From sequence record NC_061448.1: a stretch of DNA of 64,000 nucleotides; one strand, 5' to 3'. Of this stretch, positions 18,558 to 63,461 are shown in pieces. Made by a program: the position numbers and the translations under genes. The notes beneath the pieces are model-generated. The model was not told the origin of the DNA, did no database searches, and saw only the letters and a program-made list of their open reading frames with translations. Numbering within the stretch: position 1 is the first letter of the stretch; each line of letters begins with the position of its first letter.

Positions 18558-18816
18558 CTCTATCCTCTAAAACAAATTGTAGTGTGCCCTGTATATTTAC
18601 AGCATTCAGGCGCTTGCCCGACGCTGCTATCAGGCCATTCAGAACGCCGACAAGGTCAGCGCTGTAGCAGTTCTCTGCGATCTGGTGAACGTAAATATCA
18701 TCAGGTACATCGCCCGGGTTAAGCTGCCAAGCAGTACGCAAGGCAGCACCCATGAATGCCGGACGTTCTACCAGATGCTTGTTCAGGAACGAACATACAT
18801 CTTCTGCCGTCATCAT
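18523..18816 (-). CDS. Hypothetical protein (97 aa)
   Basis: Lies between polymerase and clamp, overlapping both. Confidence 0.55.
   Translation of the reverse strand: MMTAEDVCSFLNKHLVERPAFMGAALRTAWQLNPGDVPDDIYVHQIAENCYSADLVGVLNGLIAASGKRLNAVNIQGTLQFVLEDRDEDLSITEEPR
18594..18602 (-). promoter_or_regulatory. CTGTAAATA motif upstream of the clamp gene
   Basis: Exact copy, 37 nt from the start. Confidence 0.6.
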
Positions 18817-21800
18817 TTTTTCGCAATCCCCTTAAGTGCCAGCTTGAGCATGGACTTACTGATCTTGACTTTCTTGCCAGTGGTTCCACCAGCAGCGGCA
18901 GCGGCTTTCTTCTTCGCTTCCTCTGCTTCGTATGCCTCAAACTTCTTAACGTTCTTCGGAAGTTCTTTGAGCCATTCTTCGACGTTCTTCTTGTCTTTGT
19001 TGGTGAGAGGATTGACTTTATCCATGCTGCGAATCTTAATGCCATTCGCCCACAGTTGCTTCTTCATCCAATCAGACATGAGGTGATACTGATCTTCCAT
19101 GATGGAGTCAGTTGTCTTCTCAACGTCGAGGTCAGGTTCGTTAAGCTCGTCGCGTTTAATCTCCAGACCCTTCTGGATAAGTTTACGCAGACCAACATAA
19201 GAGAAGTCCCAACCGCCAACGTCTTTTTCAGACGCACCGATTTCGAAGTCGATCTCAGGCACAGACGTGAACTCAAACCCTGGATGACGCTTCTGTACTT
19301 TCTCAACCACAGCGCTTGTCATAGCGCGTTCGATCATATCAAGCGCAAGGAAGATCCACTTGTAGTCACAGTCAACGGTTAAGGAGTCGTGTACCGATAC
19401 GTTCATATCAAAGTCAGGGTACTCGCCGTTCGCTTTCCAGTATTCATACTTCATACGATCAAGAATACGAATCGCGGACATCATCAAGTCAGAACCGAAG
19501 CCCTGTACTGGACTGTTTACTGCACGTCGGTCACACGCTGCATGAACCATGTTCGCTTCTTTGTGCGACTCAGGTAACATCAAGCCCCACAAGTGACGAC
19601 GACGACCGACAGGCGATTCGACGAAGAAGTTCTCGTGTGCAAACTTCTTAATCTTATCAAACCATTTTAAGCCTACAGGGAATCGCGTTAAGAACTTGCC
19701 TTTGATTTCGGCAATCTCTTTCACGTCACGACCGGTAGACTTCGCAAGACCTTTATCGCCCTGCTGATAAATCAAGCCGAAGATAACTGTCTTAACCGCG
19801 TTACGCACAGACTTCGTTACGTCCATTACGTTTGGAATACCGAAGAAGTATGCGGCGTTGATTTTGTGAACGTCACCTTCTGCCTCGACGCGGTGTCCTA
19901 CCCACGGATCTGGCACAGTACGATAACGATGACGCAACGTTCGACCCTGTTCGAATACGTCTGCTACGCCTTGGTCACCCGAGATGATTGACCAACCACG
20001 AACTTCGTGCGCTGAGTAGTCGACCTTGATTAACAGGCGATTCTTACGCGCAATCAGAATACGTTTGATCAACTTACCCATCTCACTACGCGACGGTACC
20101 TGTTGCAAGTTCGGGTCAGACGCAGAAGTACGTCCCGTTACAACTCCGAGGTAACCATACGTCGGTCGAATTGAACGGTCGTGCTTGAAGTCTTCTGATT
20201 CTCCCCAGAGCTTGAGCAAGCTGTTAACGTAGGCGTTCTTGAGCTTGTACGCTTTTCCGAGTTTAGTGTATAGCGCAACAAGAGGCACATCCTTATACGC
20301 CTCCTGGAAGTCCTTGTCCAGTTTGCCCGACTTCTTACCGTTCTCACGTAATTGCTCGCTCTCTTTGAGTGGCTTGAGTTTCATCACGTCGAAGAACAGA
20401 ATCTGTTTGTGTTCTGCTTTCGACATATCGAACTTGGTCACTTCGACTTTGCCCATAAGACCCATCTTAGGAACATTGTCGTCTTTGCAAATAACCTTGT
20501 TCGCAGCCTTAACTTCCGGGCTGTTCATGAACTCACGCTCTACGTTTCGAATCTCTTCGTTGATAGGGCTGTTCGGCAGATTGAGCTTAAACAGGTAGTC
20601 GATATCCGCACCGGCACCTGTTGTCTCAAGTATCGAGAACGCATGAATCTGGTCGGAGATTTGCTCACTGACCATCGACTCATACTTCTTGTACTTAATG
20701 TCGTTCGCTCGAAGCATCTGCTTCTCTGCAATGCGGAACGGCACGATAACGTCGAGGCCAGCATACTCCTGCACTGACTCGTCGAGGTCAACGTCTGCAA
20801 TCGTTGCTCGCATCTCTTTACCGAACGACACTTCATGATACACCTGACAACCGAACTGCATCGTCAGGTTCGCCAAGTTGTAATAACCGTTACCAGTTAC
20901 CATCAACAACGACTTGGCGTTTTCATCGAACGCGAACTCACCCGCCTGAATATCCCAGACGTTCGCAGCGTAACTACGAATGCCAAAGTTAGAGCGCATT
21001 ACGTTCAGGTCGAACTTCGCGTTTGTGTAGATCTGATACTTGTTCTCGTTGTCCTCGAAATAGTCTTTGAACAACTCGCGTACCTTACGCAACTCTTTCG
21101 GGCTGAACGGACTATCGCGGTGATAGATTGGAACGACATACGCTTTCTGACCGTCAGAGGATAACTGCACCGTCAAGATTTTATTCTTGATACGATTCAG
21201 GTTCTCTGTTTCGGTATCGACTGCAACCTTCTTGGCGCGCTTCATACGCTTCAAGATTTTCTCAAGTTGCTTGACCTTCGTTACATACACGAGGTCCCAG
21301 TTACGCTTCTTACCACACGTAACTTCGTCGATCTTATAACGCATCCCCTTGTTCAACCACGGCAACATCCAACGTGCCATGTAACCGAGAGTGTACGATG
21401 AACCGCTAATGTGCATCGGGTTCAACACGGTGTGATAGCTCACGTTCGGCAGATGGATGAAGCTGTGCTTCTTACCCTCATGCTTGAGCTTCGTCGGAAT
21501 CTCAACACCGTACCAGTGCTCGTAGTGATCTTTCGAGAACTGAATCTTTTCGTTGTTCAACGCTTTGAACGGCGCTTTACCAAACGTCAGAACATAGTCG
21601 GGTTTGTATTCGACAATCAGATCACGAATACGATTAGCGAACGCTTGGTCTGCGTCCTCTTTGAACTGTTCACCCTTGTCATACGTCTTGAACATATTGT
21701 ACGAGACAACAAGGAAGTTCCAATCGTCGAGCGTGGTCTTTGTAGGGAACACGTCTTCGAGATACTGCATCTGGTTCAGGAACAACTCGCCTTCTGTGCT

Positions 21801-21980
21801 GCTAAATATTTTCCCGTTACGCAAGTCATCAGTCGGCATATGATCGAGGACGAGTAGTGCTTTACCACCCTTGGCGCTTTTACTTACGCCTTTTAGTATT
21901 CGAACACCGTCGTATGTTTGCTGCTCGGCAAACTGCTCAGGTGGATCGAAGTCAAGAGCTACGTGCTTGATTTTCACCAT
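18813..21980 (-). CDS. polA: Family A DNA polymerase with N-terminal UDG-like domain and 3'-5' exonuclease
   Basis: Exonuclease motifs VAVDTET, NAKFDL, YAGLD. Polymerase motifs TGRTSASDPNLQQVP, VDYSAHEVR, RNAVKTVIFGLIY, NSPVQG, VHDSL. N-terminal EYKPDYVLTFGK...LPNVSYH resembles family-4 UDG. Confidence 0.95.
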   Translation of the reverse strand: MVKIKHVALDFDPPEQFAEQQTYDGVRILKGVSKSAKGGKALLVLDHMPTDDLRNGKIFSSTEGELFLNQMQYLEDVFPTKTTLDDWNFLVVSYNMFKTYDKGEQFKEDADQAFANRIRDLIVEYKPDYVLTFGKAPFKALNNEKIQFSKDHYEHWYGVEIPTKLKHEGKKHSFIHLPNVSYHTVLNPMHISGSSYTLGYMARWMLPWLNKGMRYKIDEVTCGKKRNWDLVYVTKVKQLEKILKRMKRAKKVAVDTETENLNRIKNKILTVQLSSDGQKAYVVPIYHRDSPFSPKELRKVRELFKDYFEDNENKYQIYTNAKFDLNVMRSNFGIRSYAANVWDIQAGEFAFDENAKSLLMVTGNGYYNLANLTMQFGCQVYHEVSFGKEMRATIADVDLDESVQEYAGLDVIVPFRIAEKQMLRANDIKYKKYESMVSEQISDQIHAFSILETTGAGADIDYLFKLNLPNSPINEEIRNVEREFMNSPEVKAANKVICKDDNVPKMGLMGKVEVTKFDMSKAEHKQILFFDVMKLKPLKESEQLRENGKKSGKLDKDFQEAYKDVPLVALYTKLGKAYKLKNAYVNSLLKLWGESEDFKHDRSIRPTYGYLGVVTGRTSASDPNLQQVPSRSEMGKLIKRILIARKNRLLIKVDYSAHEVRGWSIISGDQGVADVFEQGRTLRHRYRTVPDPWVGHRVEAEGDVHKINAAYFFGIPNVMDVTKSVRNAVKTVIFGLIYQQGDKGLAKSTGRDVKEIAEIKGKFLTRFPVGLKWFDKIKKFAHENFFVESPVGRRRHLWGLMLPESHKEANMVHAACDRRAVNSPVQGFGSDLMMSAIRILDRMKYEYWKANGEYPDFDMNVSVHDSLTVDCDYKWIFLALDMIERAMTSAVVEKVQKRHPGFEFTSVPEIDFEIGASEKDVGGWDFSYVGLRKLIQKGLEIKRDELNEPDLDVEKTTDSIMEDQYHLMSDWMKKQLWANGIKIRSMDKVNPLTNKDKKNVEEWLKELPKNVKKFEAYEAEEAKKKAAAAAGGTTGKKVKISKSMLKLALKGIAKK

Positions 21981-23634: not shown

Positions 23635-23662
23635 AAAGGAGGGGCCGAAGCCCCTTACCTTT
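23635..23662 (-). terminator. Probable terminator after the SNF2 gene
   Basis: AGGGGC-TTCG-GCCCCT hairpin followed by CCTTTGTT. Confidence 0.6.
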
Positions 23663-26600
23663 TAGACTGATTTGTTTTTCGACGCGGTCAGTTTCAACTT
23701 GTCGATGCCTTGAATCGCTTTCTTGATGTTCGTGATGGTGTAGCCAGCTTTCACAATCTTGTTGATTCGAGCTTTCGCACCAGCAGCGTTTTTCACGAAG
23801 CCGATCCACATACCCGGTGACAGGTCGAACGTACCGAACTTACGAGTGTTAGGCACTTTCGTTCCGACGAAGCGTTTCATCTGCGGGTTCGTTTTCAGGT
23901 CGAACATGATACGCAGACGATCTTCCATCACCATTGGATATGCCTTGACGTGTTTCTTGTCAGTGGCAGACTTGTGACGCACAAGGAAGAACTGCTGCAA
24001 CTGCGACTGCAACTTGACGGCCAGTTTGTAGTTGAAGCCCATTCGAGAATGCGTTTCGTCGAAGCTATCCTGAATGAACTCCAGACGCTTCTCGGACATG
24101 CGGTCGAATGACAGTTTCTTACCTTCGATGAAGTCGAGCATTGCAACGAAGTCATCGTAGTACGCACAGTCGTAATAGACGTAATCACCAAACTCGGTGA
24201 AGTCGAAACCTTTCAGAGCTTTCGCATCAGGGTCAGTCGCGTCAGCATACAGAGCAACGAATCCGTTGTACACTGTAGGCGTCAGCTCCAGAGCCATGTC
24301 TGCGCCGCCCATATCGTCGAGAGGCACGATGGTTCCCGGCTTAGCACGACGAGTAGTGTTGTCCAACACTTTCAGTTCAGACGGCTTACGGCGACGAACT
24401 TTCTTGGCAGCTTCTTCAACACCTTCGTTGATAGGCTTACCTTCTTCCTTGTTCGCAACACGCTTGGCAACGCGAGCAGCTTTACGCGCTTGCGCTTCCA
24501 CCTTCTTCTCTGTCTCTTTCGTGTCGGCAGTCTGCGTTTCGTCGAGAACGGTGTCTTCAACTTCAACACGGTTCGCTTCGGCAGTAGCACGTTTGCGGTC
24601 TTTCTCATTCGCCCACGGCTTACGCTGTTCGAAGAAACGTTTCAGATCGTTCTTGTCTACCTTAGTAGCAATGTGAACTTTCGTCGCAGGAACTGCAACG
24701 GTCTCACCAGTGCCAGCCAGACGAATACGAACGGTACTGATAGGGCTATCGCCACGCAGCTTACCATCAACCATACGCACAGTCACAGACACGACAACAC
24801 CGTTACCGAACTCAGTCACGACAGGTGCACGATTCAGAGAATCTTTCAGCCCTTCGCCGCTTGTGAAGTTACGGTTACGTGCCCAGTCCAGAATACGCTC
24901 AGTGCCCCAGCCATTACGATCAGGGATCTTCTGGTTGGCAACGAGAGGCGTCTGCTCCATAACACGGAAGTCATTCAGAGCCGGAGTTGACGGCAGCGCT
25001 TGCATTGCTGCAATCGTTGTCTTACGCATCTCTTGGAACTCTTGTGACTCGATTTCGTTCAGGTCGCGCTTCGCATGGAAGTACGGCAGGAAGTCATCCA
25101 TCGTGTTGTTATCGATCAGCAGCTTCGCGCTCATTTTGATCGGGTCCAGTTTGTACTGGTCGAGTGCTTCGTAGCGCTGGTTGCCTTTCTCGTCGAAGCG
25201 AGTCTTCTCAAGGGTCTTCCACATCAGACGAGCGACCTTACCAACTTCCAAGGTCTTGTTCGTCATAACCCAGTCGATGAACACAACTTCACGAGCCATG
25301 TCGCCCGGCTTACCGTTCTCGTCCAACTTCGCAGCAGCAACGTCAGGACGGAAGATACGCGCAGTAGACTGATCGTAAGTACCCGGTGACCACGGAGTAT
25401 CGCAGCGGATGATACGGCTACCCATCTGCATGTTGTGGCCTTCGGAGATTGCCTGTTCGTTCGCAATCAGAATCTGAACGTTGTTGTCAGTTTTGAATGC
25501 GTCGAGGTTAGCGTCTTTGTTCTGGCCGAGCTTACCAACTTCACCGTGATACACCACAGCAACTTTCTTATAGTTAGCTGGCAGTGCATTATAGATGGCG
25601 TTAGCAGCACGAACATAACGTGTGAAGACAATCAGTTTACCCTGCACTTCCGGCTTCCAGTATTCTGGATCATCAGGCGGCGGAGTCATCGAAGGCGGCA
25701 GGTCTTGACGTTGGAACTCGTCGGACTGCTTACGCGCCAGATACTTCTGTCCGTTGTAGACAGCGATATCCAGTTCACGAGGCTGCACACCCGGTTTCCA
25801 TTCGAAGATCTGTTGCTCTTTGATCATCGGGTCACGCTCAGGCTGCACTTCGAAGTGCTTCTTGATGCGGTCGATGATGGTCAGTACCTTAGCAGAAACG
25901 AAGTTGGTAACACCAGCAGCTTCAAACGTCATACGTGCAACGTCATCGCCCATTGGGTCAGTCAGCATCATCTCCATACGCTGGAAGTACATGTTCAGGT
26001 CAGCGTTACCCGCCAGCAGTGCGCCGAGGTCATCGCCTTCTTCGATTTCGTCTTCGTCAATGTCAGACGTGCTATCGCTTTCAGCACCACCAGCATCTTC
26101 GTCGTCGTCATCGTTAGAGCCGCCAGATTTCTTCTTGGCGTTCTTAGCCGCTTCGTCCAACTTCTCCAGCACTTCTGCGTACATTGCGTTGTACACTTCT
26201 TGGTGCAGAGCAGAGTTAGGAACTGACGGGTCATCGATCTCAACCTGAATGAAGGTATCAATCGGGTTAGGCAGCATGAATGCCCAGTGCTTACGCTTGA
26301 ACGAGATGAACGCTGTATGGTTTGCCATACGTGAGTGCGCACGACGAATCATTTCAATGTCGTCTTTCGCGCCGTCATATGCAACGTCCAGTGAGTCACC
26401 GAACATAGCAGGCGTCATCAGTGCAGCCTGACCAACAATGTCACGCACACGGTCAGTTACCAGCGTACCAGTAGCGATACGAGCATAGCGAACAGACGGA
26501 GCAGTGAAGACCGCTTTGGTGTTGAAGTGAACCTGAGAACCAGATTGACCACCAGAGAAGTTTTTCACTTTGTGCGATTCATCGAGCAGCACATAGCTGA

Positions 26601-29514
26601 ACTTGAAGCGGTTAACGAACTCTACAGCACCACGCACACGAACACGCACACCGCCAATATCAACGTTGAACGTACCAGTTTGCAAATAGCTCAGGCCGAC
26701 GATGAAGATTGTGTTACGAGGTGACTGAGAGATCACATCGTACATACGTTCTTCGCCCCACGTGTTCACGGTGTCAGCAGTGATAGGCACTGCGTTCCAA
26801 CCGTTAACGATTTTGTGGAGGTCGTCACACCAGTTCGCTACGAGGTTAGACGGGCAGATGATCAGAGGACGAATTGTTTCTTCACCCAGGTCATCAAGCT
26901 CTTTGATAAGAGCAGCAATATCGGTCAGGCCAATAATCGTCTTACCACCGCCAGGCGCGATAAAGATTGTTGCGTAACGCGGACGACGACGCAGAGTTTT
27001 GTGCGCTTCGACCTGATGCGGCAGTAACGCTGCACCGTCTTTCAGACCCGGAATACGGATATCGTCAATCGTGATACCGCTGTCAGGTTTCAGGCGTTCG
27101 ATCTCAGTCTCAGCCGCTTCGAAAATCTCAAGAGACTTAGGAATCACATCGCTGTACATCGTAGCGAACGGCAGGATGATCTGTTGCAGACGACCAGAAC
27201 CCGGAGCTTCTTCGGTCTCAATCAGAGAACTGAACAGCTTCTTACGGTCAGCACGTACAAGCGCCTGAGTCATTTCACGATACACAGCACCACCGAAGTA
27301 GTTGTTGAGTCGTGCCATATCAGACAGCTTAGACTTCTCACCCATCACGAAGTAGTGAGTGTGCGACGGCAGAGATTCGGTTGCAGCCGTAATGCTTCCC
27401 ATCTCAGACAGAGAGGTTGCAATCAGGTTAGAGCCTCGCAGACCAGCAGCATCGTTCAGCACACGAATCATGATACGAATCATGGTCAGTGCAGGACGCT
27501 CGTTCGACATGTCAGGCACAGAGAAGTCATTAGCAATGAGGTTCTCGTACAGACCGCGATCCATCGGGCTTTCTTCAAGGGACGCGTTCTCTGCATCCAT
27601 GCCGATTGCTTTACGTGCGTTTTCCACCAGCGTTTTCAGGTCAGGAACTTGTTTGCTCTTGAGCATGAACTCGTAGGTCTGACACGTCTGCGCAATGATG
27701 TTCAGCAGCTCAGGCAGGTTAGAACCTTCGGTGGAGTTGTACTTGATCGTGGACTCACTCACACTCTCAATCAACTTACCGTTACCGGATTCAACTTTAG
27801 CAGCTTCAACCATCGTGTCGAATGACGGACGATACAGTGCCATGCCACCAGACGCTTGGTTGTGGTAGATGTTGCCAACCACGTTCGACACAGAACGGAA
27901 GTTCGGTGCTTCACCCGGCTCTGCGAAGTCGTAGCCTAAAGCATCAGCAACGTCGAGCGAGTTCGGTGCTTTCATACCGACAGTACGCGTTTCGTTAACT
28001 GCCAGCCCGCCACCATTAGAGGTGTTTACGATCAGCGAGAAGTCAGGGTCGATACCGATACACACGTCGCTGAAACGAGACAGAGACTTGGCTTTCGCCT
28101 GAATGTCACGGTCGAAGTCCAGATTGTTGTTCTGGATAGCGAACATGTTGGTACGCAGCGTGTCGTGCTCAGTAGACAGCGGAATGCCTTTCTCGAACAG
28201 GTCTTCAAGCACACCGTTCAATGAGGTTTCGTAGGTCTTCACCATCTCAACGTCAATGTCTTCACGACGAGGCAGAATAGCCATCGTGCCGTTTGGCATG
28301 ATAGTCATACCATTCTCGTCTGCGACCACATCGTTCACGGCGTAACCGAACTTTTCACGCAGCTTCTTCAACTCAGGCAGAGAAGTCGCAGACGTTACAT
28401 AGCGCGGGATACGTGCAGCACGAGTGATACCAGTACGAGTAGAACCAGCAACACGGAAGTAATAGCTCGCCCAGCCCTGGAACCAACGATACAGACACAT
28501 GGTCTGCGTATCAGCACCCTGAGAGACATACTCAACCATCTCTTTCTCGAAGTTAACAATCAGACCGCCTTCAACGCGAACGTCGGTGGCCAGTGCTACT
28601 TCGTTGAAATCGACAGGAGTGTCGTGGCTAATCTTCATCGCCTGAATCTTACGATCAATCATCTGTTTCCCAGGGATTGAACGAATGCCGATAGTCATGA
28701 AGTCGCCCAGACCATCAACTACAGACTTATCCAGATTGCGGAACAGGTCAATGTCAATGTTGTGCATTGACGGGTGGATAGAACGCAGCGCAGCATTGTA
28801 CACAGACCAGTCTTTATCCAGAGGGATGCGGATCATCTTGGTGTCGAATGCGTTACTGTTGGTGCGCTCAACGCCGAAGATATCCTTGTACAGAGTCTTC
28901 GCTACACGGATTGCTTGTTGTGCAATGTCCGCGCTGTAAGTGCGCAGGTTAGCGCTTTCGAAGTTCGCATCGTTGTCAACGCGAGGACGGTCGCTACCCT
29001 GATTGTTCAGAACGTTGAAGTTACCGTTCGAAGCAAGTGGGCTGGTGGGGCACGGAGTACCAGACATGATAATGTCTTTACCGCCAGGGAAGCGCGTACT
29101 GTTTTCGATGATAGCACCAGAGGAAGAAGACAGGTGCTCGGCGAGAGCAGTCTTAATCTCACGGCTGAGCTTATCACCGTTCAGCATCATGTTAATCTTG
29201 AGCGTCGCCGCATCAACGTTGTTCTTAACACGCTTAACGAAATCTTCAGGCGCAACTTCCAGCATGTCCTCGAACTCTGCACCGTTGATAACGATGTAGT
29301 TGATCAAGTCGAACGCTGCATAGATGCGAGCTACGGTTGACGCGGTGAACACTGCGAGGGCTTCGTAGTTACGACGAGACTTCCCTGTAGCGTACATTTT
29401 CGACATTTTAGCGTCGAACTCGGGCGGCAACGGACGAATAGCAAGCGCCTGATTAAACGTATCGGCGATTTGCTGAGTCGCTGTTGCTGACACACTAATC
29501 ATCTGATTCATCAT
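23662..29514 (-). CDS. Giant SNF2-family ATPase/helicase (1950 aa)
   Basis: LLPHQ, APGGGKT, LLDESH, ATGT, SEGHNMQ, WSPGTYDQSTARIFR. About 820-aa unknown N-terminal extension and about 450-aa C-terminal extension. Confidence 0.9.
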   Translation of the reverse strand: MMNQMISVSATATQQIADTFNQALAIRPLPPEFDAKMSKMYATGKSRRNYEALAVFTASTVARIYAAFDLINYIVINGAEFEDMLEVAPEDFVKRVKNNVDAATLKINMMLNGDKLSREIKTALAEHLSSSSGAIIENSTRFPGGKDIIMSGTPCPTSPLASNGNFNVLNNQGSDRPRVDNDANFESANLRTYSADIAQQAIRVAKTLYKDIFGVERTNSNAFDTKMIRIPLDKDWSVYNAALRSIHPSMHNIDIDLFRNLDKSVVDGLGDFMTIGIRSIPGKQMIDRKIQAMKISHDTPVDFNEVALATDVRVEGGLIVNFEKEMVEYVSQGADTQTMCLYRWFQGWASYYFRVAGSTRTGITRAARIPRYVTSATSLPELKKLREKFGYAVNDVVADENGMTIMPNGTMAILPRREDIDVEMVKTYETSLNGVLEDLFEKGIPLSTEHDTLRTNMFAIQNNNLDFDRDIQAKAKSLSRFSDVCIGIDPDFSLIVNTSNGGGLAVNETRTVGMKAPNSLDVADALGYDFAEPGEAPNFRSVSNVVGNIYHNQASGGMALYRPSFDTMVEAAKVESGNGKLIESVSESTIKYNSTEGSNLPELLNIIAQTCQTYEFMLKSKQVPDLKTLVENARKAIGMDAENASLEESPMDRGLYENLIANDFSVPDMSNERPALTMIRIMIRVLNDAAGLRGSNLIATSLSEMGSITAATESLPSHTHYFVMGEKSKLSDMARLNNYFGGAVYREMTQALVRADRKKLFSSLIETEEAPGSGRLQQIILPFATMYSDVIPKSLEIFEAAETEIERLKPDSGITIDDIRIPGLKDGAALLPHQVEAHKTLRRRPRYATIFIAPGGGKTIIGLTDIAALIKELDDLGEETIRPLIICPSNLVANWCDDLHKIVNGWNAVPITADTVNTWGEERMYDVISQSPRNTIFIVGLSYLQTGTFNVDIGGVRVRVRGAVEFVNRFKFSYVLLDESHKVKNFSGGQSGSQVHFNTKAVFTAPSVRYARIATGTLVTDRVRDIVGQAALMTPAMFGDSLDVAYDGAKDDIEMIRRAHSRMANHTAFISFKRKHWAFMLPNPIDTFIQVEIDDPSVPNSALHQEVYNAMYAEVLEKLDEAAKNAKKKSGGSNDDDDEDAGGAESDSTSDIDEDEIEEGDDLGALLAGNADLNMYFQRMEMMLTDPMGDDVARMTFEAAGVTNFVSAKVLTIIDRIKKHFEVQPERDPMIKEQQIFEWKPGVQPRELDIAVYNGQKYLARKQSDEFQRQDLPPSMTPPPDDPEYWKPEVQGKLIVFTRYVRAANAIYNALPANYKKVAVVYHGEVGKLGQNKDANLDAFKTDNNVQILIANEQAISEGHNMQMGSRIIRCDTPWSPGTYDQSTARIFRPDVAAAKLDENGKPGDMAREVVFIDWVMTNKTLEVGKVARLMWKTLEKTRFDEKGNQRYEALDQYKLDPIKMSAKLLIDNNTMDDFLPYFHAKRDLNEIESQEFQEMRKTTIAAMQALPSTPALNDFRVMEQTPLVANQKIPDRNGWGTERILDWARNRNFTSGEGLKDSLNRAPVVTEFGNGVVVSVTVRMVDGKLRGDSPISTVRIRLAGTGETVAVPATKVHIATKVDKNDLKRFFEQRKPWANEKDRKRATAEANRVEVEDTVLDETQTADTKETEKKVEAQARKAARVAKRVANKEEGKPINEGVEEAAKKVRRRKPSELKVLDNTTRRAKPGTIVPLDDMGGADMALELTPTVYNGFVALYADATDPDAKALKGFDFTEFGDYVYYDCAYYDDFVAMLDFIEGKKLSFDRMSEKRLEFIQDSFDETHSRMGFNYKLAVKLQSQLQQFFLVRHKSATDKKHVKAYPMVMEDRLRIMFDLKTNPQMKRFVGTKVPNTRKFGTFDLSPGMWIGFVKNAAGAKARINKIVKAGYTITNIKKAIQGIDKLKLTASKNKSV

Positions 29515-60790: not shown

Positions 60791-62455
60791 TCACTCCGAG
60801 AATATCTTTTTGTCAGAAAACTTCTTGAGCACAAACTCGGCACATTCGCTCGTTACGCTGTCTCCTTCAACGCAGAGTAGCGCACCATCGTGCTCAAGGG
60901 AATACACACCCTTGACGTTCGGACAATTAAGAATAGCGTCAAACAAATACAGACTCTCCCAGCCAGATAGCATGTGGTTGAGAATGCGTTTGTCAATCTT
61001 CTTGCCTGTATCGTCAGGATCAGGATCATAGTTAGATCCTGTTGGGCACTGGAGTACCCCATACTCGGGTCTTCGTGCATTTTTATTTTTGCGGAACTTA
61101 GACCGGTATACACCAAGCAATTCTTTGATCGCAAGATACAGAGGAGTCATCCTCGTGTTCCAGTCTAAGATTTCCTCTTTCACTCTCGAAGCTGGCACGA
61201 AGCGAGCTAACTCTTTATAGACGTTGCTGTACTTCGTTGGTTCAAGTTGACCTGCCGAGAAGATTGTACCGTACAAACAAACCTTGGCTGCGCGTCTGTC
61301 CAATTTCATTATGCGGCTAATGTCATCCACAGAACTAATCTGGTTGAACATCGCACACTCAATACCGTAAGCGTCGAACTCTCTACGCAACACGTTGAAC
61401 TGGCTGGACTTCATATCCCAGTTAGTCCCTATCGTGTAACATTGCTCTTTAAGGTCTGACGGTAAGTTCTGGAACCCACCACCGACTTCAAACAATCGCC
61501 CGCCAATCTGAGACAGCCTGTATTTCGGCCAATAACGAACGACTAGAGGTTTCTCGCTAACGATCTGAACAGGACCCGACACTATCGTATCGAGTAACGT
61601 CTTCACCTGCAGGTATTGCTTCTTCGCCTTGTGATTAGCGATCAACGATTTGTCTTCTAAATAAGCAAGTATGGGATCGATGTTCACTTCATTGGGCATC
61701 AGCTTATCAAGTACCTTGCGATAAAGAGCACGGCCATTAAGCACCTTAGAGTTTCCTCGGTCCCGGTTACGATCAAGCGAACTAAGATCGTGCGTCGGGC
61801 GTTTGAAAGGTAGCTTAGAATTTTTCTGAATCTGCGACCACACCGTTACCCCGTAATCTTCTCGCAATATCTTGAGAGGACTATAGAATCGAATGCGGTA
61901 CAGAATATCGTAATGCGACTGAGGACTAAAATGCCCGTACATGCCGTCTAAGATTTCAGGACGCATCCTAAACTCTCGACTAAGGCGCTTTTCCTTGTTG
62001 TACGGTTTCGTTTCAAACACATACTCCATCAACCACTCAAGAGATCTACCGTATGTGCCTTTCTTCGACTTAGCATATCGCCCGACAGCAACATTATCGC
62101 CACCACGCTTGTGTCCAAAGACCATTGGCAGCTTTTCTTTCCCTAATGAGCTTGGAAACGGCACCCAGACCCGTCCAAACTTCTTTTTCTTGTGTTTACG
62201 CGCAGGATAAAGACTGCATTGAAGAATGTGCCAGAAGAATAAGTTCAATTGAGCACGAAACTCACGTTGGTCCGCATCAGGCCCATCGTACGGGCAAGCG
62301 TTTATAACGTTGTCTCGCACCCAAATAACGACTTCCTTCTCCTGGTACGAGGGATTCGTGATCAACACGGGCCCTTGTCCGGAAACGATTCGTTTTTTCA
62401 TGTTCACATCATGATTACCTGATTTTTCTATCGTTTCTTTTACAGAATCAGACAA
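60791..62455 (-). CDS. Divergent family-A-polymerase-like protein lacking exonuclease domains
   Basis: Motifs in Pol A order: GRLFEVGGGFQNLP, NWDMKSSQFNVL, RRAAKVCLYGTIF, LNHMLSGWES, YSLEHDGAL. Start codon uncertain (TTG 62455 or ATG 62402). Confidence 0.55.
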   Translation of the reverse strand: MSDSVKETIEKSGNHDVNMKKRIVSGQGPVLITNPSYQEKEVVIWVRDNVINACPYDGPDADQREFRAQLNLFFWHILQCSLYPARKHKKKKFGRVWVPFPSSLGKEKLPMVFGHKRGGDNVAVGRYAKSKKGTYGRSLEWLMEYVFETKPYNKEKRLSREFRMRPEILDGMYGHFSPQSHYDILYRIRFYSPLKILREDYGVTVWSQIQKNSKLPFKRPTHDLSSLDRNRDRGNSKVLNGRALYRKVLDKLMPNEVNIDPILAYLEDKSLIANHKAKKQYLQVKTLLDTIVSGPVQIVSEKPLVVRYWPKYRLSQIGGRLFEVGGGFQNLPSDLKEQCYTIGTNWDMKSSQFNVLRREFDAYGIECAMFNQISSVDDISRIMKLDRRAAKVCLYGTIFSAGQLEPTKYSNVYKELARFVPASRVKEEILDWNTRMTPLYLAIKELLGVYRSKFRKNKNARRPEYGVLQCPTGSNYDPDPDDTGKKIDKRILNHMLSGWESLYLFDAILNCPNVKGVYSLEHDGALLCVEGDSVTSECAEFVLKKFSDKKIFSE

Positions 62456-62461
62456 CTCTGA

Positions 62462-62560
62462 ATCCCGTACAGCTACAGCGGAGCTACTACAGGACAGCTG
62501 GGCTACAGCGGGCTTGCTACAACGCTCGTGGTACGCTTGAACATTACTACTACAGGTACA
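62462..62560. repeat. Iteron-like CTAC/GCTACAG direct repeats
   Basis: GCTACAGCGG at 62472 and 62502; CTACTACAGG at 62484 and 62547; further CTAC cores. Confidence 0.55.
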
Positions 62561-62740
62561 TCTTTAGGCGGCACGTTTTGAGATAGCTAAAATCGAGAAG
62601 ATCGCAGCTTTAACAGCCCGAACATATACCCTCAGGCGCTCTATCAAGCAAAGTAGCAGGTCAATTTAGGTCGTCTAAACCGTGTAAATTTTCCGACAAA
62701 AGCAGTACATTTTTCACCCAAATGCCCTGTTTTGTCACTA

Positions 62741-62785
62741 AAAATGAGGATAAACCGAATAAATTCAAAGGTTTATCCCCTTTTC
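62741..62785 (-). terminator. Probable terminator after the 62802 gene
   Basis: GGATAAACC...GGTTTATCC inverted repeat followed by TCATTTTT on the minus strand. Confidence 0.6.
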
Positions 62786-62801
62786 GAAACGAAAAATCAG
62801 A

Positions 62802-63461
62802 TTATTTTTTCTGTGAAACGCGTTTTCCGAGCTTAACGCCGATTTGAGTCAGGATGCGTTTGACAGTCTCGCCGTCGTGTTCTGCCATTGCAGAAGCTAA
62901 ACGTTCGCCCTGTTCGCGCGATAGCTCTGGCATAACCATTTTAAGCATCTGCGAACGCATCTTAGCAGACTTCGAGCGCCCTTTTGAGACAGACACGCCC
63001 TCGTTCGCAGTCAACGCACTACTAATCGCTTTCTGCACACGACGATCACCGAAAATGTCGCCGAATACATCACCGAACAGGTCTTTGAACGACAGTCCGC
63101 CGCTCATAATGTCGTTCTTAGTGAAACGAACAGGCTGTCCGAGTGCATTCACTTTATCGCAATGCACGGACTCAACTTCATTCGTTGTGCGTCCACCAGC
63201 ACGGAAGTTCTCGTCAGGGCGTGACGCTTTGCCCTCTGCGCCTGGCTTAGTGTTGCCGTTACGCAGATCTGCATCGCCTTCGACAGCTTTATCAGGGTCA
63301 AACATGTCGTCAGCTTTCGCGCTCTGATTCGCGTCGAACGGAATCTTACCTGTCAGCTTGTTTGGATCTGGCCAGCTATCAGGAATGTCAGACGCAGGCT
63401 GAGGCTTGTTTGTCATATCGCCGTTCGCTTCACCGCTCAAGCTAATCGTAATACGTGCCAT
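62802..63461 (-). CDS. Hypothetical protein with MARITISLSG N-terminus (candidate head protein)
   Basis: AGGAG SD before ATG at 63461; low-complexity Pro/Asp/Ala N-terminal half. Confidence 0.65.
   Translation of the reverse strand: MARITISLSGEANGDMTNKPQPASDIPDSWPDPNKLTGKIPFDANQSAKADDMFDPDKAVEGDADLRNGNTKPGAEGKASRPDENFRAGGRTTNEVESVHCDKVNALGQPVRFTKNDIMSGGLSFKDLFGDVFGDIFGDRRVQKAISSALTANEGVSVSKGRSKSAKMRSQMLKMVMPELSREQGERLASAMAEHDGETVKRILTQIGVKLGKRVSQKK

Follow-up and report, generated by a model that had tools for sequence, protein, structure and literature searches.

Why would a jumbo phage that already has a full family-A DNA polymerase (Pol A) encode a second protein with Pol A motifs? The question is raised by a 64,000-nucleotide (nt) stretch of sequence record NC_061448.1, here called the window (window position equals record position minus 124,000). 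An open reading frame (ORF) on its minus strand, 60791..62455 (1665 nt), is 100% identical to Erwinia phage pEa_SNUABM_1, an Alexandravirus and jumbo phage with a genome of 266,939 bp. It corresponds to MPK71_gp220 (hereafter gp220), deposited as ‘hypothetical protein’. An initial annotation of the window, made from the DNA letters, had described it as a minimal Pol A-like protein with five motifs in Pol A order. We find that gp220 very probably belongs to the TV-Pol family, the minimal A-family polymerases of transposons and viruses defined by Iyer, Abhiman and Aravind in 2008 (Biol Direct 3:39; PMC2579912), and within it to the subset with an N-terminal accessory domain. The initial annotation did not recognise this family; the jumbo-phage clade is a new member of a known, almost uncharacterised group of enzymes.

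A minimal family-A polymerase core

The AlphaFold2 model, built on the family alignment (mean pLDDT 77, and 82-92 over residues 230-530), has its secondary-structure elements in the order of the Pol A topology. Two thumb helices (residues 243-254 and 259-277) are followed by strands at 280-307, a beta-hairpin region that bears R304. A strand at 328-332 ends in D331, and helical fingers carry K375, Y379 and F383 on helix 371-384. The long helix 468-494 bears H478, G482 and E484, and a hairpin (498-504/508-513) holds D507 in its turn. In a Foldseek search of the PDB there were 28 matches with E ≤ 1e-3, all of them family-A DNA polymerases. The Klenow fragment is the top match (1.3e-5); Pol theta, Taq and T7 DNA polymerase (DNAP) are also present, and DpoZ comes next with an E of 1.0e-3. 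T7 RNA polymerase (RNAP) and the mitochondrial RNAP (POLRMT) start at rank 39, with E values of 4e-3 to 1e-2. Structure prediction followed by fold search, the check suggested with the initial annotation, thus supports its polymerase assignment, as the predicted fold significantly matches family-A polymerases only.

The homology between gp220 and Pol A is visible only by profile-profile comparison and by fold. We used two family alignments: A1 comprises gp220 and 14 homolog clusters (15 sequences), all from Y3/Alexandra-like jumbo phages, and A2 comprises 92 sequences including distant relatives (124 in a wider set). Compared by hhalign with a three-sequence Pol A alignment (the Klenow polymerase domain, T7 DNAP and the phage’s own Pol A, gp174), A2 matched with a probability of 77% and an E of 2.1e-5 over 204 collinear columns. 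A2 matches E. coli Pol I alone weakly (E 2.6e-3) yet collinearly, and hhalign against the phage’s own Pol A as a single sequence gave no signal. The Pol I comparison pairs R304 with R668, Q313 with Q677, K375 with K758, Y379 with F762 (Y526 of T7 DNAP), F383 with Y766, G482 with G850, and H506-D507 with H881-D882; in motif B, R/K371 falls on R754. This reproduces the mapping in which the Tyr of motif B occupies the 762-equivalent position and the Phe the 766-equivalent position.

All five motifs listed in the initial annotation are present at verified coordinates (Table 1) and fall on invariant columns of A1. Judged from this alignment, they are the invariant core of a family and not chance matches. 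In the N-terminal part of the core, the invariant columns are G302-G303-R304-L-F-E307, G309-311, F312-Q313, P316 and L319-K320. Motif A contributes N329-W-D331-M, S335-Q336 and N338; motif B contributes K375, Y379, T381 and F383; and the C-terminal part contributes H478, G482, E484, S503 and E505-H506-D507-G508-A-L. Position 371 is R or K in 14 of the 15 phage sequences. Eight residues (R304, D331, K375, G482, E484, H506, D507 and G508) are also invariant in the 92-124 distant relatives. That set was chosen on the patterns GR[hydrophobic] and HD[GSEAD], so that the invariance of R304, H506 and D507 is partly by construction, whereas that of D331, K375, E484 and G508 is independent of how the relatives were chosen. 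Both catalytic aspartates are retained, as had been proposed: D331 and D507 are invariant and stand, in the predicted fold, at the Pol A places of motif A and motif C.

How far does the likeness to classical Pol A extend? Klenow, T7 DNAP and Pol theta are the best structural matches in the PDB and share with gp220 collinear motifs and the positions of the catalytic Asp, Lys and Arg residues. However, classical enzymes have a longer thumb and a polymerase domain of ~400 amino acids (aa), whereas the gp220 thumb is much shorter and its domain measures ~315 aa. A 3'-5' exonuclease domain for proofreading is lacking in gp220, as is a 5' nuclease domain; the statement that it lacks an exonuclease held up both in Pfam and in a fold search of the N-terminal domain. 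The end of the O-helix reads F383-S384 in gp220, Met/Phe-Gly in the wider family and Tyr-Gly in Pol I. Motif C is HDG throughout the family, compared with HDE in Pol I and HDS in T7 RNAP, and the QG motif of gp220 contains an invariant Glu. We speculate that this residue, E484 of QGxE, may be a relocated third carboxylate that replaces the motif C Glu lost in HDG. 

Pol A and the T7-type single-subunit RNA polymerases share a palm/fingers superfold, and gp220 is neither a classical Pol I nor a single-subunit RNAP. We also considered and rejected identity with a DnaG/Toprim or AEP primase, as the fold of gp220 is of the Pol A type and the DnaG-type primase of the phage is a separate gene, gp229.

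Place within the TV-Pol family

As defined in 2008, the TV-Pol core has a two-helix thumb, a beta-hairpin with an absolutely conserved Arg, two conserved Asp residues and fingers of helix-turn-helix (HTH) type with an RxxxK motif, and it is never linked to nuclease domains. Some TV-Pols are fused to D5-like helicases; in the others, an uncharacterised N-terminal domain precedes the polymerase. Those with the N-terminal domain occur with resolvases, integrases or IS605/IS630 transposases, and the phage Ma-LMM01 was named as a host (PMC2579912). The model and alignments of gp220 show the two-helix thumb, the R304 hairpin and the invariant D331 and D507. Its fingers have R/K371 and the invariant K375, and nuclease domains are lacking. 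The segment before the O-helix Lys (~350-375 in gp220, 309-332 in gp225 of phage pEa_SNUABM_5) gives weak HTH matches to a designed CAP-repeat protein in the PDB and to Pfam HTH_Crp_2 and Sigma70_r4 (E about 0.01). At the level of sequence, these matches are consistent with the proposed HTH origin of TV-Pol fingers.

Searched against 1.84 billion cluster representatives, the family profile retrieved 310 proteins at E ≤ 1e-3, of which 86 reach E ≤ 1e-10; what all of them have in common is the polymerase core, the C-terminal ~250 residues. One bacterial member (P0049, 489 aa) lies on an island with genes for a serine resolvase, ArdC and RadC, and matches the jumbo-phage proteins by BLASTP over nearly its full length (1e-17 to 1e-14), from which it follows that the N-terminal domains of P0049 and gp220 are homologous. 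P0049 also matches gp030 of Microcystis phage Ma-LMM01 (506 aa), which adjoins two transposase genes. The relationship to gp030 is strong with A2 (probability 99.8%, E 9.9e-30, 424 columns) and is still detected with the jumbo-phage-only A1 (probability 92%, E 6e-7). A genome scan with a tighter alignment (A3) found bacterial homologs in Nostoc, Nodularia, Calothrix and various metagenome-assembled genomes (MAGs); the loci returned were cyanobacterial and from other MAGs, and did not include the species listed in the 2008 paper. Neighbours of the bacterial homologs include a tyrosine integrase, a Rha/KilAC antirepressor, a GIY-YIG endonuclease and an N6 methylase. Together with the resolvase, these neighbourhoods match the published description of TV-Pols (PMC2579912).

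Viral structures point the same way. After the protein’s own family, replication proteins of the TV-Pol-D5 type from virophages and algal viruses are among the best matches in BFVD (PoV 1.3e-7, Zamilon 4e-5, Qinghai Lake virophage 7e-4). Such fusion proteins of virophages and polinton-like viruses (Sputnik V13/Zamilon type) match the structure of gp220 at least as well as classical Pol I does. They join the polymerase module to a D5-like helicase at the C-terminus and serve as the only replicase, whereas gp220 has no helicase and is accessory.

The N-terminal domain is common to gp220, the bacterial mobile-element TV-Pols represented by P0049 and Ma-LMM01 gp030. It was predicted to be all-helical in 2008 (PMC2579912), compared with mainly helical plus a beta-hairpin in our model. 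Modelled alone (residues 1-240), it has a mean pLDDT of 70, with 72-91 in the core. Its weak fold matches are mostly winged helices (MarR, the RQC domain of BLM and the tandem winged helix of A49) and include no exonuclease. These matches only weakly suggest that the domain binds DNA. The initial annotation was therefore right that this part of the protein is no exonuclease; the boundary that it had put at ~280 aa lies near residue 223, and its proposal of DNA binding receives only that weak suggestion.

Although gp220 shares both the minimal core and the N-terminal domain with TV-Pols such as that of the Ma-LMM01 element, its setting differs. It occupies a fixed slot in a 267-kb lytic jumbo phage with a complete replisome of its own, and no recombinase, transposase or D5-like helicase lies beside it. 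The typical TV-Pol context (a D5-like helicase, or the resolvase, integrase or transposase of a mobile element) is not seen in the jumbo phages: there, replication and recombination genes of the phage and genes of no assigned role surround the TV-Pol. A tblastn search finds the gene in 57 records of Erwinia, Dickeya and Yersinia phages, each 250-267 kb long and each with the gene at the same map position. The order resolvase, gp222 and gp221, gap, TV-Pol, and further on peptidase and clamp loader, is kept in Y3, JA11 and pEa_SNUABM_5. Across several genera the jumbo-phage TV-Pols are 20-92% identical and keep their active-site residues. The same slot and the kept residues indicate long vertical inheritance under selection, and gp220 is under purifying selection.

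In a quick maximum-likelihood tree, the Erwinia, Dickeya and Yersinia proteins form one clade (SH-aLRT 96). The clade lies inside a group of 30 phage-like sequences; another 95, of the mobile-element type and with Ma-LMM01 among them, fall outside this group. One of the near members (P0019) is on an 83-kb phage-like contig beside genes for a flap endonuclease, ThyX and PhoH.

Possible roles of a second polymerase

So, what is a second polymerase for? Because the phage already has a proofreading Pol A replicase, a DnaG primase and a clamp loader, we infer that gp220 is an auxiliary, proofreading-free enzyme, which agrees with the earlier suggestion that it has a task other than that of the main Pol A. 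Of the roles considered, the likeliest, by analogy with the A-family enzyme CcPol-MP, is that of a DNA primase-polymerase or initiator, an assignment that we regard as tentative. Overall, a minimal auxiliary TV-Pol with a primase-polymerase or initiator function is probably the best explanation of the locus. The enzyme would be a low-processivity, DNA-templated DNA polymerase that starts chains de novo. It would initiate synthesis at particular sites (an origin or a restart point), or fill gaps in recombination-dependent replication or repair. The N-terminal domain would hold the template in cis, as the separate MP/SSB subunit does for CcPol.

The 2008 prediction for TV-Pols, made from their context, was that of minimal A-family enzymes of an ancestral-like kind, capable of priming DNA as well as extending it (PMC2579912). 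CcPol-MP, from staphylococcal SCCmec, primes de novo with dNTPs when its single-stranded DNA-binding subunit is present, and CcPol without this partner only extends primers (Bebel et al. 2020, PMC7581432). Its priming is also described in PMC10061031, and enzymes of this type have been called PolA-SSB primases (Rice 2023). The primase or initiator function offered in the initial annotation agrees with both the prediction and this precedent; the RNA polymerase function offered beside it is disfavoured. CcPol-MP and gp220 are both A-family polymerases without an exonuclease and both are encoded apart from the main replisome, and CcPol-MP is the sole relative shown to prime de novo. However, the N-terminal domain of TV-Pols is absent from CcPol, which retains remnants of an exonuclease domain as well as Pol I residues E710 and F762, and has HDE where gp220 has its HDG and QGxE signatures. 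It also depends on a linked helicase and on an OB-fold protein as a separate subunit, whereas gp220 has no conserved small neighbour.

Several results weigh against a priming TV-Pol. The Pfam model PF00476 (DNA_pol_A) matches neither gp220 nor any of the 92 relatives, and PDB sequence searches with phmmer and hmmsearch (alignments A1 and A2) returned no polymerase, only the designed HTH repeat and noise. The gp220 motif A carries two extra residues, and the hhalign register of motif A against Pol I is ambiguous. This leaves two candidates for the equivalent of the Pol I steric gate, the position that bears on a preference for dNTP or NTP: N338, which is invariant in the phage clade and variable elsewhere, and Q336, which is nearly universal. 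In the fold search, the best match of the N-terminal domain (E 0.41) was not significant. Next to gp220 there is no D5-like helicase, no recombinase and no conserved small OB-fold partner. The downstream gene gp219 belongs to no Pfam or PHROG family and has no homolog beside the gene in JA11 or pEa_SNUABM_5. With a canonical DnaG primase in the phage, a second primase is not obviously needed. To our knowledge, only the distant CcPol-MP has been assayed among the relatives of TV-Pols, and none with the N-terminal domain. Finally, Ma-LMM01 gp030 is only presumably the ORF that Iyer et al. had in view; we identify it by the phage that they named, its neighbouring transposase genes and its motifs.

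Nothing in the gp220 sequence tells priming from extension, which brings in a polymerase that is dependent on primers and fills gaps during repair, translesion synthesis or recombination. The gene cluster around gp220 would suit such a task, with a RuvC-like Holliday-junction resolvase, a Cas4-like nuclease of the PD-(D/E)XK type, an SbcC-type exonuclease (SbcCD) and the clamp loader, as would the lack of proofreading, the CcPol precedent, in which the polymerase alone extends primers only, and the fact that no conserved small partner adjoins gp220. We nevertheless consider it rather doubtful, since priming is predicted for TV-Pols from context (PMC2579912) and the conserved N-terminal domain could stand in for a template-binding partner. 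Unlikely, too, is a replicase that was captured from a mobile element and takes no part in phage replication, either a selfish or decaying passenger or a protein repurposed against host defences or competing elements. It is true that the closest non-phage relatives sit in integrative or transposable elements, that no long ORF of the window is more atypical in codon usage than gp220, which also has low GC, and that at tblastn sensitivity the family is absent from the PaBG/Lu11 relatives. But no mobile-element integrase, transposase or resolvase flanks gp220 in the phage, known defence-system models (PADLOC) give no match, and the conserved slot, the kept active site and the separate clade described above also count against it.

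A divergent single-subunit DNA-dependent RNAP, transcribing a subset of phage genes or making RNA primers, is highly improbable. The shared fold, the appearance of T7 RNAP and POLRMT in the structure search and a spacing after the motif A Asp (DxxxSQ) that by motif reading is closer to T7 RNAP than to Pol I are in its favour, and an ancestral primase (RNA polymerase) activity has been proposed for TV-Pols (PMC2579912). Yet hhalign against T7 RNAP gives an E of 0.11 and a probability of 0.5%, compared with an E of 2e-5 for Pol A; about 38 DNA polymerase structures stand ahead of the first RNAP; and no Pfam RNA_pol model matches. In the O-helix of T7 RNAP, Y639-G640 form a pair in which the Tyr hydroxyl reads the 2'-OH. 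This ribose-sensing pair is replaced by F383-S384 in gp220 and Met/Phe-Gly in the wider family, which argues against a mechanism of the RNAP type. T7-type enzymes are also much larger, and the ~315-aa polymerase domain of gp220 has no promoter-recognition modules. Related phages are reported to redirect the host RNAP with a phage sigma-70 factor (PMC7412058), and CcPol uses dNTPs (PMC7581432).

Returning to the primase-polymerase reading, a more specific form of it is improbable: a self-contained single polypeptide whose winged-helix-like N-terminal domain replaces the SSB of CcPol-MP and recognises the upstream repeat region, which would make gp220 an origin-specific leading-strand initiator. 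On that reading, these jumbo phages would have a third type of primase chemistry, the A-family type, beside their DnaG primase. The clade places vertically inherited TV-Pols in lytic phages of Erwinia, Dickeya and Yersinia that can be cultured and have tractable laboratory hosts, and connects them with over 300 cluster representatives, so far unannotated, from bacterial mobile elements. This is a system for asking whether an A-family polymerase can prime alone, what the N-terminal domain does and why a phage keeps a second, proofreading-free polymerase. It also calls for a correction of annotations from ‘hypothetical’ or ‘putative helicase’ to TV-Pol.

The gene, its neighbours and related phage genes

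The deposited coding sequence of gp220 starts at a GTG (Table 1), and residue numbers here refer to that 538-aa protein. An in-frame ATG at 62401 (536 aa) is the start in most homologs, and the true start is likely one of these two. The ORF as first delimited has the exact 3' end; its TTG start at 62455 (554 aa) is probably 16-18 codons too far upstream. The protein falls in PHROG 30690 (‘unknown function’, E 1.6e-215), and neither gp220 nor its relatives are matched by any model in Pfam, NCBIfam or PADLOC. Its use of rare codons, noted earlier, is borne out by the lowest codon-adaptation score among the 55 long ORFs of the window (0.569, compared with 0.707 ± 0.067).

Table 1. Positions of gp220, its domains and motifs, the upstream gap and the replication genes of pEa_SNUABM_1 (window coordinates unless another record is named)
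Feature	Position	Strand	Description
gp220 coding sequence	60791..62407	-	deposited CDS from GTG 62407, 538 aa and stop
N-terminal accessory domain	61739..62407	-	residues 1-223; mostly helical, one beta-hairpin 131-134/144-148, possible winged-helix-like unit
Minimal A-family polymerase domain	60794..61738	-	residues 224-538; short two-helix thumb, beta-hairpin, palm, fingers
Pre-motif GGRLFEVGGGFQNLP	61460..61504	-	invariant R304 and Q313; aligned to Pol I TGRLSS..PNLQNIP (R668, Q677)
Motif A NWDMKSSQFNVL	61388..61423	-	catalytic D331 ending strand 328-332; SQ pair kept as in Pol I DYSQ
Motif B / O-helix RRAAKVCLYGTIFS	61256..61297	-	R/K371xxxK375; Y379 at F762; F383-S384 at Y766-G767
Helix-Q motif LNHMLSGWES	60953..60982	-	family consensus LQGxE; G482 aligned to Pol I G850; E484 invariant in 124 sequences
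Motif C SLEHDGAL	60878..60901	-	H506-D507 aligned to Pol I H881-D882; G508 in place of Pol I E883 family-wide
Non-coding gap upstream of gp220	62408..62801	-	394 nt
Terminator-like hairpin and T-run of gp221	62742..62784	-	
Sigma-70-like site	62709..62738	-	
Two 22-nt blocks identical in phage Y3	62667..62688, 62558..62579	-	flanking proteins only about 73% identical
CTGTAG repeats	62470..62555	-	3 of the 12 CTGTAGYWR sites in the window
gp174, main family-A DNA polymerase	18813..21980	-	1055 aa, 3'-5' exonuclease domain; deposited as ‘hypothetical protein’
gp229, DnaG-type primase	NC_061448.1 193049..194107 (L001:17259-18317), just outside the window		CHC2 zinc ribbon 1.2e-8, Toprim_2 6.9e-6

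The full Pol A that the initial annotation had placed in the window was confirmed in gp174 (Pfam DNA_pol_A 3.7e-53, DNA_pol_A_exo1 2.8e-16). In this phage group, Pol A is reported to bear an N-terminal UDG domain as well (PMC7412058). The primase gp229 is deposited as ‘hypothetical protein’, although the corresponding genes of Y3 and JA11 carry the label primase. Close by, gp231 (L001:18681-19665), annotated ‘CRISPR/Cas system associated’, encodes the Cas4-like PD-(D/E)XK nuclease (PF12705, 7e-8), and no CRISPR context was found for it in the stretch examined. The ‘DNA helicase’ gp177 (23662..29514, minus strand, 1950 aa) has SNF2-related and Helicase_C domains as its only recognisable parts, which leaves ~1500 residues unassigned.

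We considered gp219 as a small partner subunit and found no support for this, as it is not conserved beyond phage Y3. On the other side of gp220, gp221 (62802..63461) and gp222 (L001:11682-12791) stay beside the TV-Pol gene in Y3, JA11 and pEa_SNUABM_5; gp222 is 58-78% identical among them, far above the TV-Pol itself. Both are in PHROGs of unknown function, and they are possible partners of gp220.

The gap between gp221 and gp220 does contain short repeats, as had been reported. The two conserved 22-nt blocks each occur once in the window and hence are not a recurring promoter motif. The gap matched no Rfam family and contains no tRNA. For the leader, the folding signal relative to shuffled sequence is marginal (z = -2.05). 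From its sequence, the gap is possibly a promoter and leader, a regulatory site or a binding site.

Across the 57 phage records the gene is labelled ‘hypothetical’, except in two pEa_SNUABM_5 records, where it is a ‘putative helicase’. We reject that label: gp225 of pEa_SNUABM_5 (L026:4938-6605) contains no helicase domain and is homologous to the TV-Pols over its full length (probability 99.2%, E 8.8e-20). In motif C it has EFDG, with Phe for His, and its O-helix (K..NFGG) is more like that of Pol I. The annotated start of gp200 in Dickeya phage JA11 (L022:12001-13635; 405 aa) removes most of the N-terminal domain; a tblastn match of gp220 to this locus is unbroken from residue 15, so that the true gene probably encodes ~530 aa. 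The searchable literature, including a 2021 comparative survey by the same laboratory, does not mention TV-Pols in jumbo phages. Phages of Vibrio coralliilyticus (195-208 kb) also carry ‘hypothetical’ genes that match the bacterial-type TV-Pol P0049, in vB_VcorM_GR7B (MT366760.1 109426..110523, E 3e-14) and GR11A (MT366761.1 67208..68251, E 3e-11), and these matches point to TV-Pols in other large phages too.

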